Program-made: the position numbers and the translations under genes
Origin: Hyaloraphidium curvatum SAG 235-1
Lineage: Eukaryota > Fungi > Monoblepharomycota
Assembly: GCA_025558095.1 (NCBI GenBank)
Contig: JAIVFI010000024.1
Span: 1-64,000, forward strand
Length of the DNA: 64,000 nt
Direction of reading: 5' to 3'
The notes under the pieces: model-generated
What the model saw: only the letters and a program-made list of their open reading frames with translations
What the model was told of the DNA's origin: nothing
Databases searched by the model: none
In this document: positions 2,381 through 62,622 of the stretch, piece after piece
How positions within the stretch are numbered: the stretch's first letter is position 1
Layout: each line of letters starts with the position of its first letter

Positions 2381-2987
2381 GGGGGCTCGGACGTGGCGCT
2401 GATGGGCCGATGGAATTGGGCGGCGGACGGGGGCAGATGGGTCGGGATCCTGCCGATACCCTGCGCACTGGTGGGCGAGCGTTGTTGGGCGGAGCAGCGA
2501 GCAAGACAATTTTTTTGATCTTCCTGCGGCTCCACGGCGCGGCGCCGATCGCGACGTCCGGTCCCGAGGAGGTCACATCTACGGGCTAAGGGGTTCGACG
2601 CTCGTCAACAACGCGCCCGGCTCGCGTTGAGCTCAGCACGGTACCTCGGCGCGCTCTTACCGTGCCGGACTGCCTCATTGAGTCTTCGGCTGGCCATCGT
2701 GCCCGAGGACGGAGGAGATGAGGACGGCGGTGCTGCATTCGGCGGGGACGGACACGAGGTCGCGCCACGCCGGGAAGCGGCGCGATCCGTAAGTTGCCCA
2801 AAAGGGAAAATCTCGCTCTATTCCCGACACGGACCGGGCCCGGGCAGGGTGACGCCTCCGCCGTGCGTTCGCGGAGATTCTCGCCGTCGAAACCTCGTCC
2901 TCGGGCAATCCGCGCCTTCCCCCGCGAATCCGCTCCTCGGGTCATTTGGACGCGTTTTCTACGCGACGCGGACGCGCCTCCACCGCG

Positions 2988-3803
2988 ATGGGCGCCGCGG
3001 AATCGTACATCTCGGCCGCGATGTTCCCCCGCCCTCCTCCCTCCTATTCCACGCGCAGTGCCCCGTCGTGGCTCCGCACGGCGCGTACGCCTTCGGGGCG
3101 CGCCGTCGCCGTCGCCGTGTTCCGCCCCCGCCGGCCCCGGCATCCCGCGGCCGCGGTGCTCTACTCGCACGGCAACGGCGAGGACCTCGGGCTGTGCGCG
3201 CCGGTGCTGGCGTCGCTGGCCGACGCCTCGGGCTGCATCGTCGTGGGCTACGACTACGCCGGCTACGGCACTTCGGAGGGGACGCCGTCCGAGGCCGCGG
3301 TCAAGGAGGACGTGGTGGCGGCGGTCGGCTACCTCTCGGACGAGCTCGGCGTCCCCCGATCCCGGACAGTGCTGCACGGCCGCTCACTGGGCTCCGGCCC
3401 GACCTGCTTCCTCGCCGCCCTGGCCGCCAAGGACGGCCGCCCGTTCGCCGGTGTGGTCCTCGAGAGTCCCTTCTGCTCGGCGTTCAGGGTGGTGCTCCCG
3501 GACTCCCTCATCGGGTGGCCGGTGCCGGGCGACAGGTTCGCCAACCTGGAGCTGCTGAAAAGGAAGGGCGGGTTCGGGTGCCCCGTGTGGGTGGTGCACG
3601 GCGAGGCGGACGGGGTGATCTCGGCCGCGCACGGGCGAACGCTGGCGGCGGCGATCCCGCCGGGACAGGCACCGGTGCCGCACCTTTTCGTGCCGGGGGC
3701 GGGGCACAACGACGTGGATCTGCTGCTGGCGCGGACGGGGCGGACGCTGGAGGCGCACGAGGCGGGGTTCCTCGACGCGTGCCTCGACGCGGCCACGAGG
3801 TAG
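2988..3803 (+). CDS. ABHD17-like alpha/beta hydrolase
   Basis: LYSHGNGEDLG, GYDYAGYG.SEG.PSE, nucleophile elbow GRSLG, VHGEADGVI, GAGHND; single exon; MG start. Confidence 0.88.
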   Translation: MGAAESYISAAMFPRPPPSYSTRSAPSWLRTARTPSGRAVAVAVFRPRRPRHPAAAVLYSHGNGEDLGLCAPVLASLADASGCIVVGYDYAGYGTSEGTPSEAAVKEDVVAAVGYLSDELGVPRSRTVLHGRSLGSGPTCFLAALAAKDGRPFAGVVLESPFCSAFRVVLPDSLIGWPVPGDRFANLELLKRKGGFGCPVWVVHGEADGVISAAHGRTLAAAIPPGQAPVPHLFVPGAGHNDVDLLLARTGRTLEAHEAGFLDACLDAATR

Positions 3804-3854
3804 CCAACACGTCAATGAGACTGCCCTCCATTTCCGTCTCGCCACGGCTTCCCG

Positions 3855-5368
3855 TCACACGGTCGCGATCCCCTGAGCCGGCGACCCGACCGCCCCCGGC
3901 AGCCGTAGCGGCGGCGCCGTGAGCAGGAACGCCGTCCGCCCGACCTTGGCGAGGTAATCTGCCAGTTCCGAGAGGTACCACAGCTCGCCTGTCCGCGGCG
4001 AAGGGGTGAGCGGGATCAACAGCCGGGTCCCGCGCCGGATGCCCACCGAGGTAGACGCCCAGCTTGAACAGGCAGTGCTCGTGGATCCCCAGCGCGGCGC
4101 ACGGGATTGAGCGGTCCTTGGGCGGGTTGCTCATCGACTCGACCGCGACCTGTCCCTGTGTCAGCGGCACGTCTCCACCCCACCGCCGCCGGACGACCCA
4201 CGTTGTCGGCGATCAGCGCCACCGCGCCGCTCTCGGTGATCCAGTCGAGCAGGTGCTGGTCGCGCCCGTCCAGCGCGCAGCCGGTGCCGTTCCACATCTC
4301 CTTGGTGACCTTGCCGTTGGCCTCCATGAGCATGCGGCCGAAGCCCGTGTGGAACAGCACTGTGGGTGCATGCACATCCCCAGATTGGTAAGTCGGAAAC
4401 CGACCACCACGCCCGGACAGCGCCCACCGAAGTCGCCCTTCTTCACGACCACCCCGTCCTTGTCCATCACCGCCTTGACCTCCTTCCACCCCACCGTCCT
4501 TTTCCCCCGCCCATAGTGCCGCTCCAGGTCGATCATCACCGCGCGGCCCTGCACCGGGTGCTCCGCCAGGTTCTGCACGCCAAGCGCCCTGGCCCCGACG
4601 TGCGCGCCGTCGTGCGAGAGCACGGTGCCTGAAAAGTCGGGCGCGTAGGTGGCGGGGCCGACGATGTGCTCCCCGGCCTTGTACCCGTTGTCTGTTCCCC
4701 CGGGACCGGCCCATCAGCATCATGCTCGGTCTGCCGCCGGCGAGCGACCCACAGTAGCACACCACCGGCTTCCCCTCCCCGTCGAGGTCAAACAGCCCCC
4801 CGACGTGCGCAAGCGAGTCCCACTGGCTCGAGTACTGCAGCGTCAGGTCCACCCTGTCGTCGCACACGAAATCCGTGTACTTGGCCGACATGGGCTGGTT
4901 GAAGGTCGGCTTGGCGGGGTCGCCGGTGGGGGCCAGCACCGGCGGCCCGCGGCCCATGACGAACATCGGGCCCGGGAGGTTGAGGGGAAGGGAGAGGCAG
5001 AAGGTGCGGTAGTCCTTGACCTCGTCGATGCCCTGCTTGACCTTTTCGGGTGTCACGAGGTTGAGCCGGCCGCGCTGGTCTGGACGCCGGGGGTAAGCGA
5101 GTGCCTCCCACGCGTCCGCCGCGCCGGCAGCCCACCGTCGGGCCCGAAATCGCCCCACGTCGATCCCTTGGGCCGAAACTTGTACCGCGACGTGCGGGTG
5201 GGCGCCTCCTCGGGCGCCAGGTTGGCGGAGAGCCGCACGTGCTGGCCGTGGACGTGGGCCGACTGCCGGGGCCGGGGCGCTGATGAGTAAGATGTGTGCG
5301 CCCGGCGGCGGTAAGCAGACACGTACGATGGCCGAGGCGCGCTCGTCGGCCTTCTTTGCCGCCGACAT
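3855..5368 (-). CDS. Cyclase family (kynurenine formamidase-like) metal-dependent hydrolase, multi-exon
   Basis: STWGDFGPD/DQRGRLNL, LTLQYSSQWDSLAH, QGRAVMIDL, LFHTGF, LIADN, HEHCLFKLG, LWYLSELA, FLLTAPPLRLPGAVGSP. Confidence 0.85.
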
Positions 5369-6530
5369 CGCGGGGGAGGCGCGTGGCAAGTTGTGTTTGG
5401 GAGACGCTCCGGGTGCCGTAGCCCGATTCGTGCCTACACAGGAGCAGTACCGCTTGGATCCGGTGCGCGGACCTGAAGCGACGAAAGTGTATCTGTATCG
5501 TGAGATACTCCGATGTTCGGCCCCGTGAGCCATGTCCTTGAGCGGGTGACGCCCTCGAGGTCACCAGCAGGCTCGCTGGGCCACGAAGACAGGAAGCCAC
5601 GCTTCAGCGGCCGAGCGATCTTGTTCCAGAAATACGCACATCGGAAACCCGTTAAATTGGATGCCGGCCGGCGCCGCACTTCCGCCTTCGGAGGGCGGGA
5701 CAACTCAAAGATCCGCAAGGGTCCGTCAACCTCGCTAGTAGATGGGCGAGAGAGAACGAGATCCGCGAACACCGGCGGCGGCCGGGCTACGAGCAGACCG
5801 TGAAGAGGAACGCACCTGGGGGTTCACGGCGTCGGGCCAGCCGTTGAAGTTGCCGGGAGCCGCCATGGTCGCAGGTCGTGCGTGCCGGTCGGAATCGGTG
5901 CAGGAGAGGCCGAGGACGTCAGCAAAGTTCGGAGAAGGGCCAGATCTGCCCGGCCGCCGCCAGGGATCGTGCTCTGTTCGTTGAAACCCTCATCGATCTG
6001 GTGCACGGACATTGGGGGGCAAATCGGAATCGGAACGCTGACGTCACCCATCTTTCAAACCGTCTCCCCGACTCCCCACGCCGCACGCCCCAAAGCGCTC
6101 GGCAATGATGGCACTCTCCGCAGCCGATTTTGTCCGCGGCATCAGATGGCGTGCATCCTAGAGGTCGGGCCGGGCCGGTGCGGAGCGGTGATCTCGTCCA
6201 GGCCGGTGGCGTTCCTCCGCGGCCACGAACGCCGCCTCGTCCAACGGCCCCCACGGCATGATCTATTCAGGCCATGTGGAGGAGTGTCTAAATGTTCCGG
6301 AGCTCCTCTGGCGACCTGGACGCGGGAGGTCACGTTATTGGTGCCACCAACTTGTTTTGGGAAGCCTCTCGCTGATTCCTGCCAGCCCTTCTACCCATCA
6401 AGGTGTGCCCATTTCCTGCGGGTTCTATCTCTCTTCTACGTCTCGTCTAGGTCTAAGCTAAATGCATCAGCACCGCATCTTTGCGGCGGAAATAGGTAGT
6501 AACAAAGTCCGTAAGCCCGCCGACCCCAGC

Positions 6531-57393: not shown

Positions 57394-60278
57394 TCAAGTG
57401 CAGAGGCAGGCGCTCCCGGAGAAACTGCACGGCGAAGCCTGGGCATTGTCGCATGCGCAGATTGCCGAGTTGGGTGGAAGACACACGGCTGACAACTCGG
57501 AATGAGGATCAGGGAGCGTGCGGTGTCCGCAGTCACCCACTTGCAAAAGCAGCCGCGCCGGATGCAGTGAAGTTGGCAGGCAAAACGTAGTCGGGTCCAT
57601 TGCCGGCCGGGGCAGCTGGCGCCAGGGATGCGATTAAGGACGCCGCGGTCGATCGCACAAGACAGCCCACCGCCGAGCCCGCTTGCGCCCCTGAATGCGG
57701 CGCCGATGCTGCCGGGCGCCATCAAGACGTTGGTAAAGTTGTGGAGCGCCTGGGTGTTGTCGATGTTCCCCCGGACAAGGTTCCAGGGCGAGAGCTTGCC
57801 TATCTCGATGCGGAGCCGGTCGCCGAAGCCCCTGAAAAGGGTCGATCCGCCCGCGACAACAATCTTCATGGTCATAGCTCCCGCCCTATAGACCTGGGGG
57901 GTAGCCGCCACGGCCGCCGCGGCGATGTTCGCCAACCCGGGTCCGCCTATGCCGATGATCCGGGGCCTGAAGATCGCCTCGGGGACCGTCCACCTTAGAT
58001 CGCCTGGCACGGTGACGTTGGTTCCGTTGGCGAGCCTGAATCGGGCGGACGGCGTCCTGCCCCTGGATGCCGCGGCGTCGGGGACGGAAGCAAAGAACAC
58101 GTTGCGGGCCTGCTTGAGTTCGGCGGCCTGGGCGGCGGTGATGCGGAGCTGGCGGGCGATGTAGGAGTCCAGGTCGGAGGCGACGAGCGTGGTGGTCCTG
58201 ATCGCTGCCAAGTAAGTGAAGATGTTGCCATTCTGCTTGAAGACGGGGACCGCGCTCGCGGTCTGTCCAAAATCCAGGGAGAGGGCCTGGGTCCCGTCCG
58301 AGACTGCACATCCGAGCCGATGATGAGCCAATAGCAGGTGACGGAAGACGAACAAAGACGCACCCGACCCCGTGATGAACGGCTCCACGAGCGCAGGCTG
58401 GCCGATCCACAGCGCCGCGGGTGAGAACTCGGTCATGACCCTGGTCGAAAAGGCCATGCGCACCGCCATGGTGTTGAGCGGCGAGACCAGGAAGATCAGT
58501 TTGTTCGCGACCTGGGCCGTGTTGCGGACGCCGAGGAGGCCGAGAGCGTACTTGATCACGAGGACTAGGCCAGGCCTCCACGATGCGAGGAATCAGCGGC
58601 GCCGCGAGATCGCGCATCCCTTCTCCACCCACGTGTCCGACAGAATGCCGTTGACGATCGGATTTTTGGTGGGCCTGCCGGAGTCGACCGCCGGCCGGCC
58701 CACCAGGATCGTCCCGTTGGCGAGCGTCACGTAGACGTTGGGGAAGCTGAGCTGCGGCATACCGTCTCCGGCGTAGCCAGCTCGCACGGTGGTCGATCCG
58801 AGATCCAGCACGAGCACCTTGGACGCGTCGAGGGCCTGCTTGACGAGGGCAACCTCGGGCTTGAATGGGGTCGTGACGCTCGGCTGGCCGCTGCGGATCT
58901 TCTGGGTCTTGGAGTCCGGCTTGCTCGACAGGCAAGCCTTGGCCTGGACGGGCGGCGTTGGCAGGATGAACGGATGAACGCCGCACTGTTCCGCTCACCA
59001 GTGTAGGTCTGGTCACCGCAGCGACACCGTGCTCGCCAACGGCAACGCACTGGCAGCATATGTCCGAAATGCTCTTCTCGCACGGCGTCGAGCACTCCAC
59101 GGCGTTGAAGATGCCCGTGATGGTGGTCGCACTCACCGAATCTGCACGCGACCCCGCGGGTCAGTCGCTGCTGGATCCGCAAGACTGCCTCGCGATGTCA
59201 CCTTTGGTCCAGCCCGTCGGCGACGGCCCCTTCCACCTATAGATGACGTTGCCATAAGCGTCGCTGTCGAGGCCGAGAGCAATGCAGTCGGTTGTTGTTG
59301 GGCAGTTGATGTTAAGAAGATCCGAGACCCCGAAAAAGACGGACGGCGGCACCACGCCGAAGGTCCTGCGGGATTTGCTGTAGTAATAGATGCGAGCGAC
59401 TGTGCTGTCGTCCGCGGCGCTCTCGGTTCGGAAAATGAACGTGGTGTCTCCCACAACCTGCACGACCTTGAAAGGATCCAACGTAGCGTTCGGAAAGGGA
59501 ACCGGCGTCCATTTGGTGCCGTTGAATGCCATAACGGTGGAGAGGTCCCCTACGGCCATGCAATCGGTCCGGGAGGAGCAGGTGACGTCGATCATGGCAG
59601 GGACGGAAGCTTGAGAGAGAATCCATGTTCCATTCCTTCTCACGAAGATCAGGCCTGAGAATGACAGCCATGTCAGAGTAGCTAGGGTGCGTGTAGCGGC
59701 GCCGCACCTCCAGTTTGGCGAGTCTCGTCGGCAAGCGCGGCGTCGGCGCCGACCGCCACGCAGAAGCTGGCGTCCACACATTCGATGTACGAAAAAGTGA
59801 ACGTCTTTGGCACCGCAAGCGCCCGCTTGATAGACCATCCCGTGGCTTGCCACGTCGAAACGGGCTGACCCGCCCCAGCGGCAATGCACTGACCCCCGGC
59901 CGGGCAGCTCTGCCACGAGATCAGTGCCCCGTCCGCGGAACAAGGCGTGACTCTCACGATGCTCGATACATTGTAGTCCGTGTCGAGCTGCAGTGAGAAG
60001 GTGCCGTTGCGCGTCGCGCCAGCTGCCCTGCTCGCGCCCGAGAACCCGTAGACATTCCCCAGGAGGCCCGCGGCGAGGAACAGTTTGGTCGACGGGTTGA
60101 AGGAAACGTCCACCTGCGGCACGTGAGATCCGCGCGGAACGGGGTATGCGGAAGACCCCACCAGGTTGTCGACACTCGGCACGCCGGCGACGGCGATGTT
60201 CGTCCACTTCACCGCGTCCGCGACCGCGGCGAGAGCGGCGAGCAAAACGTACCCGAGAGGGGCGAAGCGCGTCGCCAT
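57394..60278 (-). CDS. Signal peptide + Cys-rich beta-propeller-like repeats + divergent actin-fold domain + Cys-rich tail
   Basis: Exons 60278-60162, 60113-59708, 59654-59202, 59141-59017 and 58943- join in phase via GT-AG introns; actin motifs VLVLDLGSTTVRAGYAG..P, PLN, LDFG..AVPV, VPEAIFRP, VVAGGSTLFRGFGDRL..EI; terminal exon VCLPPNSAICACDNAQASPCSFSGSACLCT*. Confidence 0.78.
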
Positions 60279-60857
60279 CTTTCCGACTTCAACGCGGCGA
60301 CCTGCGGGTTCCGGCGACGACCTCGACGTCCCCCCCGTCCAGAGCGTCCTGATCGAAAGTGCCCAGACCTCATAGCATCGCCGGCAATCGGCACCGAAGT
60401 GGCTCCGCACCGGTTCCCGAGACCGGGGCCTGGCTCAAGGCGCACGCAGATTTGAGGATAAGAAGTAGGCACGGCACCTTTCTTTCTGCTCATCCGAGCT
60501 TGTAATGCGTTGAGGATGTGTGTGCGGGTGGCCGAAGCGTGCGGACGCGGTAACACCCACCAGCCATTGAAGGGCCGAGAACATTTGCATCGCCGCGCGT
60601 TGCACTCCCTTGTCACTCCCTGGCAACAGCAGTGCCAACACGCCCTCGGAACTGGAACAGATTCCGCTTTCGGGCTCAAGGGATTCTCAGGGGTTGATCT
60701 CAAGCAATCTTGGATCCGTCCCTGAACCCAAGGGCCGACAAGGTCCCTAGCGTGCACCACCAGCCCGAGGCCGGAGCAACAGCATCGCCTTTTCCGCTCG
60801 ACCCCAGTTCGCTATCGCTCGTTCTACCTCACTCCGTCGACGCTGCAACATCGGTTT

Positions 60858-62622
60858 ATGGCGGGGCCAAGCGTCTGGAGTGTCGTCGTTCGAGTGTTGG
60901 CGGCCGCCGTCGCGGCCCTTGCGGTTCTGGGGAACGCGGCGGCGCAGGACACGGGGGACGAATTGCCTCTTGTCATTGATCTTGGCAGCAGCACCACCAA
61001 AGCTGGGTTCGCCGGAGACGATGCGCCGCGCGCTGTGTTCCCCACGCTGGTGGGGTGGCCGCGGGTTCGGGTGAGTGCTGCGTGCACGACCGCACGCCAT
61101 CTAGTAATGCGAGTCCGTCGTGCCCATATCCGAAGGGCGTCATGGTCGATATGGGCACAAAGAATGCTTATGTTGGAGACGAGGCCGTGGCGAGACGTGG
61201 CATCTTGGCCCTCAAGTACCCGATCCAGTACGGCATCGTCACTAGTTGGGAGGACATGAACAAAATCTTTGTGCGTGCGCGTTGAGCCGGCTCACCGACT
61301 GGGAGTTCTGACGTGTTTTCTGACGTGTTCCAGCACCATGTCTTTTACAACGCGCTGCGGGAGGCACCAGAAGAGCACCCAGTGCTGATAAGTGAGTGAT
61401 GCGTGACCGCAGGCGCCTGCCTGAGCTCAAGCAGATATTGCCCCGACCGTGACAGCTGAGCCCCCTCTCAACCCCAGCGCAAACCGGGAACGAATCACGC
61501 AGATGATGTTCGAAACCTTCGGAGTGCCCGGTAAGTCGTTCGGGGCCAAGCATATTTCGAGGATTAATCTCACGCCCCGGTATCGGCGTCGTAGCCTTCT
61601 ACCTCGTGAAGGAGCCTGTCCTCTCTCTGTACGCGTCTGGAAGGACGACCGGTACGCCAGGAAGGTCCCATTCGTGTCATCCTTGCTGATTTTGCATGCG
61701 CCATTCTAGGTCTCGTCCTCGTGTCAGGCGACCAAGTGACGCATGCGGTTCCAGTGCACAAGGGCTCCGTTGTGTCTCCTGCCATCATGCAGCTCAAGCT
61801 CGCTGGTTCGGACATTACCGCCTACCTGGTCCAGATGCTCACGGACCGCGGGTACGAGTTCACGTCAGGCTCGAAAGGATACGTGAAGGACATCAAGGAA
61901 ACACTGGGCTACGTCGCATTCGGTGCGTTGGACCGCCGTTGATCTCTCGGTCCGATCTCTGATGGTCTTTCAACAAGACGTTGCACGCGAGATGGCGGCC
62001 TCGGGCATCGACAGGGAATACGAACTCCCGGACGGCACGGTGATCACAGTCGGCAACGAGCGATTCCGGGCGCCGGAGGTAAGCTCAGCGGCGGGCACTA
62101 GCCCGTACGGCCCAGGATTGCCTTTATGATCCGCGCCGAACGAATGTCCTGGCCATACCAGATACTGTTCAACCCCGCCCTCGCAGGCAAAGAAGGCATG
62201 GGAATTTCGCAGCTAATCTACACCAGCATCCAGAAGTGCGACGAAAGCATCCGCAAGGACCTCTACGAGAACGTTGTCCTGGCTGGCGGCTCTACGAGTG
62301 GGATCAACCTGCAGCGCACTCGCTTTGAGAGCTGACACGCTCATTGCCAGTGTTTCCCGGCTTGGTCGAGCGTTTGCAGAAGGAGATCAGGGCACTGGTG
62401 ACCCCGAACACTAGGGTCACGATCATCGCCCCCCCCGATCGCGCTTACAACACTTGGATAGGTGATGGTCACGACCGTACTCACCCACAATTCGGCTCTC
62501 TGATCTGTTCTGTTGTAGGTGGTTCCAGCCTCGCGACGCTCTATACGTTTCGCGATATGATGATAACGAAGCCGGAGTACGAAGCATCGGGGCCGAAGGT
62601 CGTGCACACGAAGTGCTTCTAG
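60858..62622 (+). CDS. Actin paralog with N-terminal signal-peptide-like extension (10 exons)
   Basis: Exons 60858-61070, 61136-61270, 61334-61391, 61456-61530, 61595-61651, 61710-61922, 61978-62078, 62162-62297, 62351-62461, 62519-62622; [57 protein letters not shown], ends HTKCF*. Confidence 0.92.

Follow-up and report, generated by a model that had tools for sequence, protein, structure and literature searches.

In the usual view, actin and its relatives reside strictly in the cytosol or nucleus and need a chaperonin in order to fold; actins are not known to act in the secretory route or outside the cell. Inside the secretory route, the best-known protein with an actin-superfamily (ASKHA) fold is BiP/Hsp70 of the endoplasmic reticulum (ER) lumen. 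An actin-family domain can also be one part of a larger protein, as in Filactin of Dictyostelium, where it forms the C-terminal part of a multi-domain protein (PMC2441452). Here, we describe a gene of the early-diverging water fungus Hyaloraphidium curvatum SAG 235-1, a monoblepharidomycete, whose product is predicted to carry a signal peptide, a seven-bladed beta-propeller of bacterial affinity, a linker, a strongly diverged actin fold, and a tail with six cysteines (Cys). The gene occupies positions 57394 to 60278, on the minus strand, of the first 64,000 nucleotides (nt) of contig JAIVFI010000024.1. We refer to this whole 64,000-nt stretch as the window; it consists of GC-rich eukaryotic DNA and belongs to contig 24 of the 31.9-Mb, 55-contig H. 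curvatum genome.

A first-pass annotation of the window, made from the letters alone, had read the locus as a novel fusion of propeller-like repeats with an actin domain. The fusion is not new as a database entry, since a model is already in GenBank (KAI9015364.1), but the architecture is undescribed in the literature that we found: our searches returned no paper on Hyaloraphidium actins or on actin-family proteins with signal peptides.

Results

The propeller and actin parts are encoded by one expressed gene, and its three modules (propeller, actin part, and tail) are all under purifying selection. The transcript evidence consists of contigs from one public RNA run, which were mapped to the window; because these contigs lack the short GT..AG segments of the genomic sequence, they derive from spliced RNA. 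They define a minus-strand gene of 10 coding exons, E1 to E10, that runs from an ATG at 60278 to a TGA stop at 57394-57396. The coding sequence is 2397 nt long (798 codons), with all 10 exons in frame and free of stops. The RNA joints place nine introns in the coding region and one in the 5′ untranslated region (5′UTR), all 10 with GT..AG ends. Listed in the direction of transcription, the features are as follows.

60499..60560, minus strand: 5′UTR intron of 62 nt, GT..AG, with its joint in an RNA contig; the transcript starts upstream of 60561
60213..60278, minus strand: start codon and predicted signal peptide of 22 residues, from sequence and hydropathy; no in-frame upstream ATG before a stop
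58999..60212, minus strand: predicted seven-bladed beta-propeller, from RNA joints, reading frames, AlphaFold 2 (AF2) and Foldseek on a paralog, and bacterial homologs
60162-60278 (E1, including the start), 59958-60113 (E2), 59708-59909 (E3), 59202-59654 (E4), and 58999-59141 (E5), minus strand: propeller coding exons
60114-60161 (48 nt), 59910-59957 (48 nt), 59655-59707 (53 nt), and 59142-59201 (60 nt), minus strand: propeller introns, from RNA joints
58944..58998, minus strand: phase-0 intron at the propeller/linker junction, 55 nt, GT..AG; crossed by an RNA contig with 108 nt on its shorter side
58821..58943, minus strand: linker of ~41 residues, rich in Ser, Thr, Pro, and Lys, with one Cys, from the E6 translation; low predicted local distance difference test (pLDDT) score
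57541..58820, minus strand: predicted actin-fold domain with no Cys, a short DNase I-binding loop (D-loop), and five sequons, from Pfam, PDB, AF2, Foldseek, and residue mapping
E6 (part) to 58633, 58364-58575 (E7), 57671-58303 (E8), and 57541-57615 (E9), minus strand: actin coding exons
58576-58632 (57 nt), 58304-58363 (60 nt), and 57616-57670 (55 nt), minus strand: introns of the actin part, from RNA joints
57489..57540, minus strand: last intron, 52 nt, with its joint and ends checked
57394..57488, minus strand: six-Cys tail with the spacing C-x7-C-x-C-x7-C-x6-C-x-C, from the translation, and TGA stop (57394-57396)

Two RNA contigs cover the gene. One, of 1468 nt, reaches 108 nt into E5, the exon with the last Cys repeat, and continues across the E5/E6 junction to the 3′ end. 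The other, of 2488 nt, comprises the first 55 nt of E5, all exons N-terminal to it and the 5′UTR, and extends into a divergently transcribed actin gene. RNA across the propeller/actin junction, which the first-pass annotation had named as a check, is therefore found, and the junction of a paralog on contig 8 is covered likewise. The intron that the annotation had placed at this junction (59016-58944, 73 bp) is real, of phase 0, and in frame, but its donor is at 58998 and its length is 55 nt. The single uninterrupted first exon of that reading does not hold, as the RNA contigs remove 60161-60114 and 59957-59910 (48 nt each, in frame). As the annotation remarked, the bacterial-code list of open reading frames (ORFs) breaks up 60278-57394: two of the resulting pieces match Pfam Actin, whereas the N-terminal pieces match no Pfam model. 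There is no in-frame ATG between the propeller and the phosphate-1 loop of the actin part.

The gene is deposited in GenBank as KAI9015364.1 ("actin-domain-containing protein," 830 amino acids [aa]; model P0151), a form that retains both 48-nt introns. This model equals the RNA-based exon set plus introns 60114-60161 and 59910-59957, both absent from the RNA contigs. The likely product of the gene is the spliced form of 798 aa, because the equivalent introns of the contig-8 paralog (49 and 57 nt) must be spliced and because the retained form would add an odd Cys. At the other end, the RNA contig stops at 57383, ~10 nt past the stop codon, and is followed by Illumina adapter sequence, with a depth of ~1 below 57387. 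Either the 3′UTR is very short or the RNA contig is cut.

Two paralogs share this organization. The contig-8 copy has a public record as a hypothetical protein of 798 aa (P0001), is 87-89% identical to the window gene, and has the same 10 exons, the first two introns being 49 and 57 nt long. The third copy, on contig 43 (56500-64500; local 3687-5944, plus strand), matches E4-E10 at 38-61% identity, including the six-Cys tail, and was not found among deposited proteins. It has fewer introns, with none at the E4/E5 or E5/E6 positions, and its last Cys repeat, Thr/Lys-rich linker, and actin phosphate-1 loop lie in a single uninterrupted frame. Loose ends of other RNA contigs correspond to the contig-8 gene at its spliced E5/E6 junction and to the contig-43 gene at its linker; since RNA matches exist for all copies, all three paralogs are transcribed. 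In the H. curvatum genome, the propeller domain is confined to these three fusion genes, and the three paralogs are also the only genes in which the six-Cys tail was found. Homologs of the actin part were sought by word-based searches, which returned only the two H. curvatum proteins and no ortholog from another species, a result limited by word and length settings that leaves absence unproven.

Comparing the codons of the contig-24 and contig-8 genes exon by exon gave a synonymous divergence (dS) of 0.44, a nonsynonymous divergence (dN) of 0.077, and a dN/dS ratio (omega) of 0.18. The propeller and the actin part each have an omega of 0.19, and the tail has one of 0.05. Introns of the two copies are 58-89% identical, similarity stops at the start and stop codons, and the neighboring actin genes are far more diverged. 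We considered whether the contig-8 copy might be an allele; this is ruled out by the 84% nucleotide identity, the diverged flanks, and the different intron lengths. The two copies are old duplicates under purifying selection and are neither alleles nor pseudogenes.

Whole-protein searches and folds were run on public models, mainly the contig-8 paralog P0001, rather than on the joined window exons. The first-pass annotation had counted five C-x(n)-C-x-A-[AVL]-G repeats before the actin domain and likened them to extracellular propeller repeats of actinobacterial proteins. The five motifs, as C-x(5-8)-C-x-A-[AVL]-G, are present in the window gene (two in E3, two in E4, and one in E5), and their likeness to bacterial, including actinobacterial, propeller repeats is borne out by HMMER, cluster names, and an Atlas search. 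As for the fold, a propeller is what AF2 and Foldseek indicate, but with seven blades rather than five, of which five carry the Cys pair.

The repeats are of a widespread family: when exon E4 was compared by phmmer with 1.84 billion representative sequences, 2400 matches had E ≤ 1e-3 and 176 had E ≤ 1e-10. The best non-self matches (E 3e-31 downwards) hold 5-16 matched repeats each, and those with names are all bacterial (Gemmatimonadota, Actinomycetota, and Candidatus Magnetoglobus), as are the nearest ESM Atlas clusters. Seven-repeat windows of 51 bacterial repeat proteins align in register with P0001 residues 24-360. With this alignment, AF2 gave an all-beta model of the contig-8 propeller with 29 strands, a pLDDT of 83.1, and a predicted template-modeling (pTM) score of 0.84. 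The best Foldseek matches of the model are seven-bladed propellers (Ycf48, which leads, and WD40), with template-modeling (TM) scores of 0.62-0.74. Strand number, pTM, and top matches all fit a closed seven-bladed ring. The Cys pair has been lost from two of the seven blades. Judging from the repeat register, the ring should be closed by pairing of the last, partial repeat, which holds five Cys, with the N-terminal Trp strand.

The sequence also has the marks of the bacterial Cys-pair repeats, namely C-x(5-8)-C-x-A-x-G with a Trp motif, a period of ~40-55, and significant profile similarity. No Pfam model was significant for the propeller (P0001:24-360), the linker, or the tail, with no match to PF14870 at E ≤ 10, and a PDB sequence search with the propeller returned nothing significant. 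By sequence comparison, the propeller is of bacterial affinity, its only sequence relatives found being bacterial.

The C-terminal part is, on modeling, a complete four-subdomain actin fold. Pfam Actin (PF00022) scores 86.4 bits on P0001, where the cut-off is 27, and 35.9 and 47.5 bits on single exons of the window gene. The best PDB sequence match of the actin part is Arp1 (E 1.3e-20), followed by actins at 1e-17 to 1e-12. In an AF2 model built with an alignment of 74 full-length actins, the actin core has pLDDT mostly at 75-95, and the linker and tail are of low confidence; Foldseek aligned this model with actin structures over ~385 columns at target-normalized TM scores of 0.81-0.85. The first-pass description of this half of the protein stands: the actin domain carries N-x-S/T sequons, its D-loop is shortened, by nine residues relative to Arp1 or actin in our alignment, and a Cys-rich mini-domain, the six-Cys tail ending at the stop, follows it. 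We also found an insert of 13 residues that precedes the last sheet strand and contains a sequon; the C-terminal actin segment is retained at normal length and has diverged.

The actin part keeps Asp11, Gly13, Ser14, Asp154, Gly156, and the GGST loop, and with them the DxGS and GGST(L/M)F motifs. In all three paralogs, the residues corresponding to Gln137, Asp157, Gly158, His161, Lys213/Glu214, and Lys336 are either substituted or deleted, so that the intact nucleotide site and catalytic residues of the actin family are not preserved. In a tree of actin domains, which had no clear Arp set, the branch is about 10 changes per site long and placement is impossible. Arp1 leads the other PDB matches by only about 12 bits and the ATP site is not kept; no orthology is assignable. 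The linker before the actin part has a Thr/Lys-rich counterpart in the contig-43 paralog, and its one Cys is the 14th of the N-terminal module.

Several features bear on where the protein resides. Judged by inspection and hydropathy, the N terminus is a predicted signal peptide of textbook form: 22 residues with an Arg-bearing n-region, an 11-residue stretch with a mean Kyte-Doolittle (KD) value of 2.5, and A-x-A just ahead of the predicted cleavage site. An equivalent leader is present in the contig-8 copy. The presence of n-, h-, and c-regions sets the protein apart from the actin family, whose known members are cytosolic or nuclear and lack signal peptides. Past the leader, hydropathy gave no further segment resembling a membrane span; the best 19-residue stretch has a KD value of 1.68 (the usual cut-off being ~1.6) and lies within a modeled actin-core helix. 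There is no ER-retention signal, as the C terminus reads ...CLCT. This combination is that of a secreted or luminal protein. A glycosylphosphatidylinositol (GPI) anchor was also considered and is ruled out, as the C terminus is not hydrophobic.

The distribution of Cys and sequons points in the same direction. The actin core has no Cys, compared with a median of five and a minimum of one in 97 actins, and the spliced protein has even counts on either side, 14 Cys in the propeller and linker and six in the tail. Sequons number 10-11, compared with 5.3 expected from shuffles (P 0.01-0.03), and five are in the actin part, where actins have a median of one. Three sequon sites are conserved in the contig-43 copy, which is roughly 50% identical: one in the shortened D-loop, one in the stretch that replaces ELPDG, and one in the insert. 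A D-loop bearing a glycan would be unable to form the canonical filament contact. Furthermore, extracellular modules (dockerin, Big_1, and FN3) accompany the propeller in its bacterial relatives. The signal peptide, even Cys counts, and sequon enrichment together suggest a secretory location. These clues are mutually consistent and independent of each other, yet they are predictions, and the luminal or extracellular location that the first-pass annotation had proposed gains from them and from the Cys-free actin core while remaining a prediction itself.

Head-to-head with the fusion gene, at 60858-62622 on the plus strand, lies a near-canonical actin gene (public model P0256, 400 aa; Pfam Actin 410 bits), whose introns are backed by GT..AG joints in an RNA contig. 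Its product has a 30-residue hydrophobic leader, LVSGDQV instead of LDSGDGV in the phosphate-2 loop, no sequon, and two Cys. Across 60279-61069, one RNA contig is unbroken from the minus-strand 5′UTR, intron 60499-60560 included, into the plus-strand actin gene; thus, the divergent transcripts overlap or abut. A neighboring actin gene also occurs on contig 8 (299000-307000; local about 2526-3107, minus strand). Its public model (P0261, 365 aa) starts inside the phosphate-1 loop, and the genomic frame upstream of this start encodes an Arg-rich, Ala/Leu-rich leader. There, the ATG-to-ATG distance between the neighboring actin and the fusion gene is only ~150 nt.

Discussion

The explanation that we favor, with a probability of roughly two in three, is that a single gene encodes a secretory-route protein in which a predicted signal peptide, a propeller, a linker, a diverged and non-hydrolyzing actin fold, and a six-Cys tail follow one another. 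We infer that, after its signal peptide is cleaved, the protein would enter the ER and travel the secretory route, becoming disulfide bonded and N-glycosylated on the way. The mature form would consist of a seven-bladed propeller closed by N- and C-terminal strands, a flexible linker, the diverged actin fold, and a 30-residue six-Cys knot. Rather than a filament-forming ATPase, the actin fold may be an inactive scaffold, that is, a non-hydrolyzing structural or binding module. The propeller could be the ligand-binding head; ligands that would suit propellers of this kind are polymers of the wall or matrix and peptides.

Several observations count against this explanation. Folding of eukaryotic actin needs the cytosolic chaperonin CCT, and we know of no CCT in the ER. 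The head-to-head neighbor has a leader, yet it lacks sequons and has kept two Cys. Upstream ATGs occur in the 5′UTR, near 60378 and near 60373; the latter opens an out-of-frame upstream ORF that overlaps the main start. The two RNA contigs that cover it share only 19 nt, within E5, and no single contig contains the whole mRNA. Lastly, a signal peptide and the first three blades were looked for in the contig-43 paralog and not found, being either absent or too diverged.

Could these observations mean that the locus has been misread? If two separate genes, for a secreted propeller and an independent Arp, had been wrongly joined, or if the locus were a decaying pseudogene, the splitting of the locus by the bacterial-code ORF track and the lack of a single RNA contig for the whole mRNA would be accounted for. 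We consider this highly improbable. RNA contigs cross the junction in two paralogs, the contig-43 copy reads through it in one open frame, and no ATG is available for an actin-only product, which excludes the two separate transcripts that the first-pass annotation had set against its own reading; ten exons that are all in frame and a dN/dS of 0.18 do not fit decay. A cytosolic protein, or one with its bulk on the cytosolic face, is a more serious alternative, although still an unlikely one. The hydrophobic N terminus would then be a membrane anchor or go unused, and the Cys would bind metal or stay reduced. Such a location would agree with the normal dependence of actin folding on CCT, with upstream ATGs that may shift the start used, and with the absence of signal peptides from known actin-family members; according to the Dictyostelium study, neither a signal peptide nor a membrane helix occurs in any actinome member of that organism (PMC2441452). 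However, the Arg before and the Asp after the hydrophobic core fit an N-in, C-out orientation, and no downstream in-frame ATG would give a complete propeller. Moreover, the Cys-pair propeller family is extracellular in bacteria, and a cytosolic location would leave both the total loss of Cys from the actin core and the enrichment of sequons unexplained.

Another possibility, which we also regard as doubtful, is that the protein belongs to a polymerizing extracellular or luminal actin system, in which the altered actin domain caps, nucleates, or co-polymerizes with the neighboring actin and the propeller anchors it to wall or membrane. The two genes are divergent, share one RNA contig through their spacer, and both encode hydrophobic leaders; the same pair recurs on contig 8, and derived changes in phosphate-1 are common to both products (DLGS followed by Ser/Thr, not DNGSG). 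Yet both pairs come from one duplication and hence are not independent, and no actin gene lies within 8 kb of the contig-43 paralog. A short D-loop with a conserved sequon would block the canonical longitudinal contact, the catalytic residues are lost, and the neighbor has no sequon. In the boldest form of this idea, for which the odds appear similarly low, an actin-derived system would operate outside the cytosol, with signal-peptide actin and propeller-anchored pseudo-actins assembling in the lumen, wall, or medium, following fusion of a duplicated actin with a bacterial propeller gained by horizontal transfer.

Whichever ligand the secretory-route protein that we favor may bind, its architecture places a modeled complete actin fold behind a predicted signal peptide and between Cys-rich modules, with all Cys lost and conserved sequons gained. 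A likely origin is that an early-diverging fungus captured a bacterial extracellular propeller and fused it to a host cytoskeletal gene. If the proposed location is correct, the actin fold is re-usable outside the cytosol and H. curvatum provides a natural actin domain that folds without CCT. Should an extracytoplasmic actin system prove true, this would be the first case in which the eukaryotic actin family is used outside the cytoplasm.

How does this protein compare with known systems? The closest relatives of its N-terminal half are bacterial Cys-pair propeller proteins such as MFN9215282.1, from a Gemmatimonadota metagenome-assembled genome, in which the repeat reads VSC-x-S-x3-C-x-AVG ... 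W-N-G-x2-W; motif and period are as in the fungal copy, HMMER E values are 3e-31 to 1e-11, and seven repeats align in register. Some of these proteins match Pfam DUF6087, DUF2510, or PSII_BNR. They carry 7-14 or more regular repeats together with Ig-like, dockerin, or FN3 modules, whereas two blades of the fungal copy have no Cys pair, and none of the 10 top bacterial matches scanned has an actin domain. The best structural match is the seven-bladed photosystem II assembly factor Ycf48/HCF136 (TM 0.65-0.74, E 5e-12). With 14-16% identity and no PF14870 match, this is a likeness of fold, not of family or function.

Among proteins with an actin-like fold, BiP/Hsp70 belongs to another family, is an active ATPase, and carries an ER-retention signal, unlike the fungal protein with its ...CLCT end. 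Filactin resembles the fungal protein in having a C-terminal actin domain behind a long N-terminal extension. It differs in its nearly conventional actin domain and, according to the Dictyostelium study, in lacking both a signal peptide and a Cys tail and in carrying an extension other than a propeller (PMC2441452). With conventional actin and Arp1 (centractin), the fungal domain has in common the full fold, DxGS, and GGST(L/M)F. At ~21-27% identity to them, it has lost the catalytic residues, nine residues of the D-loop, and all Cys, has gained a 13-residue insert and, in contrast to both, stands behind a predicted signal peptide and a propeller.

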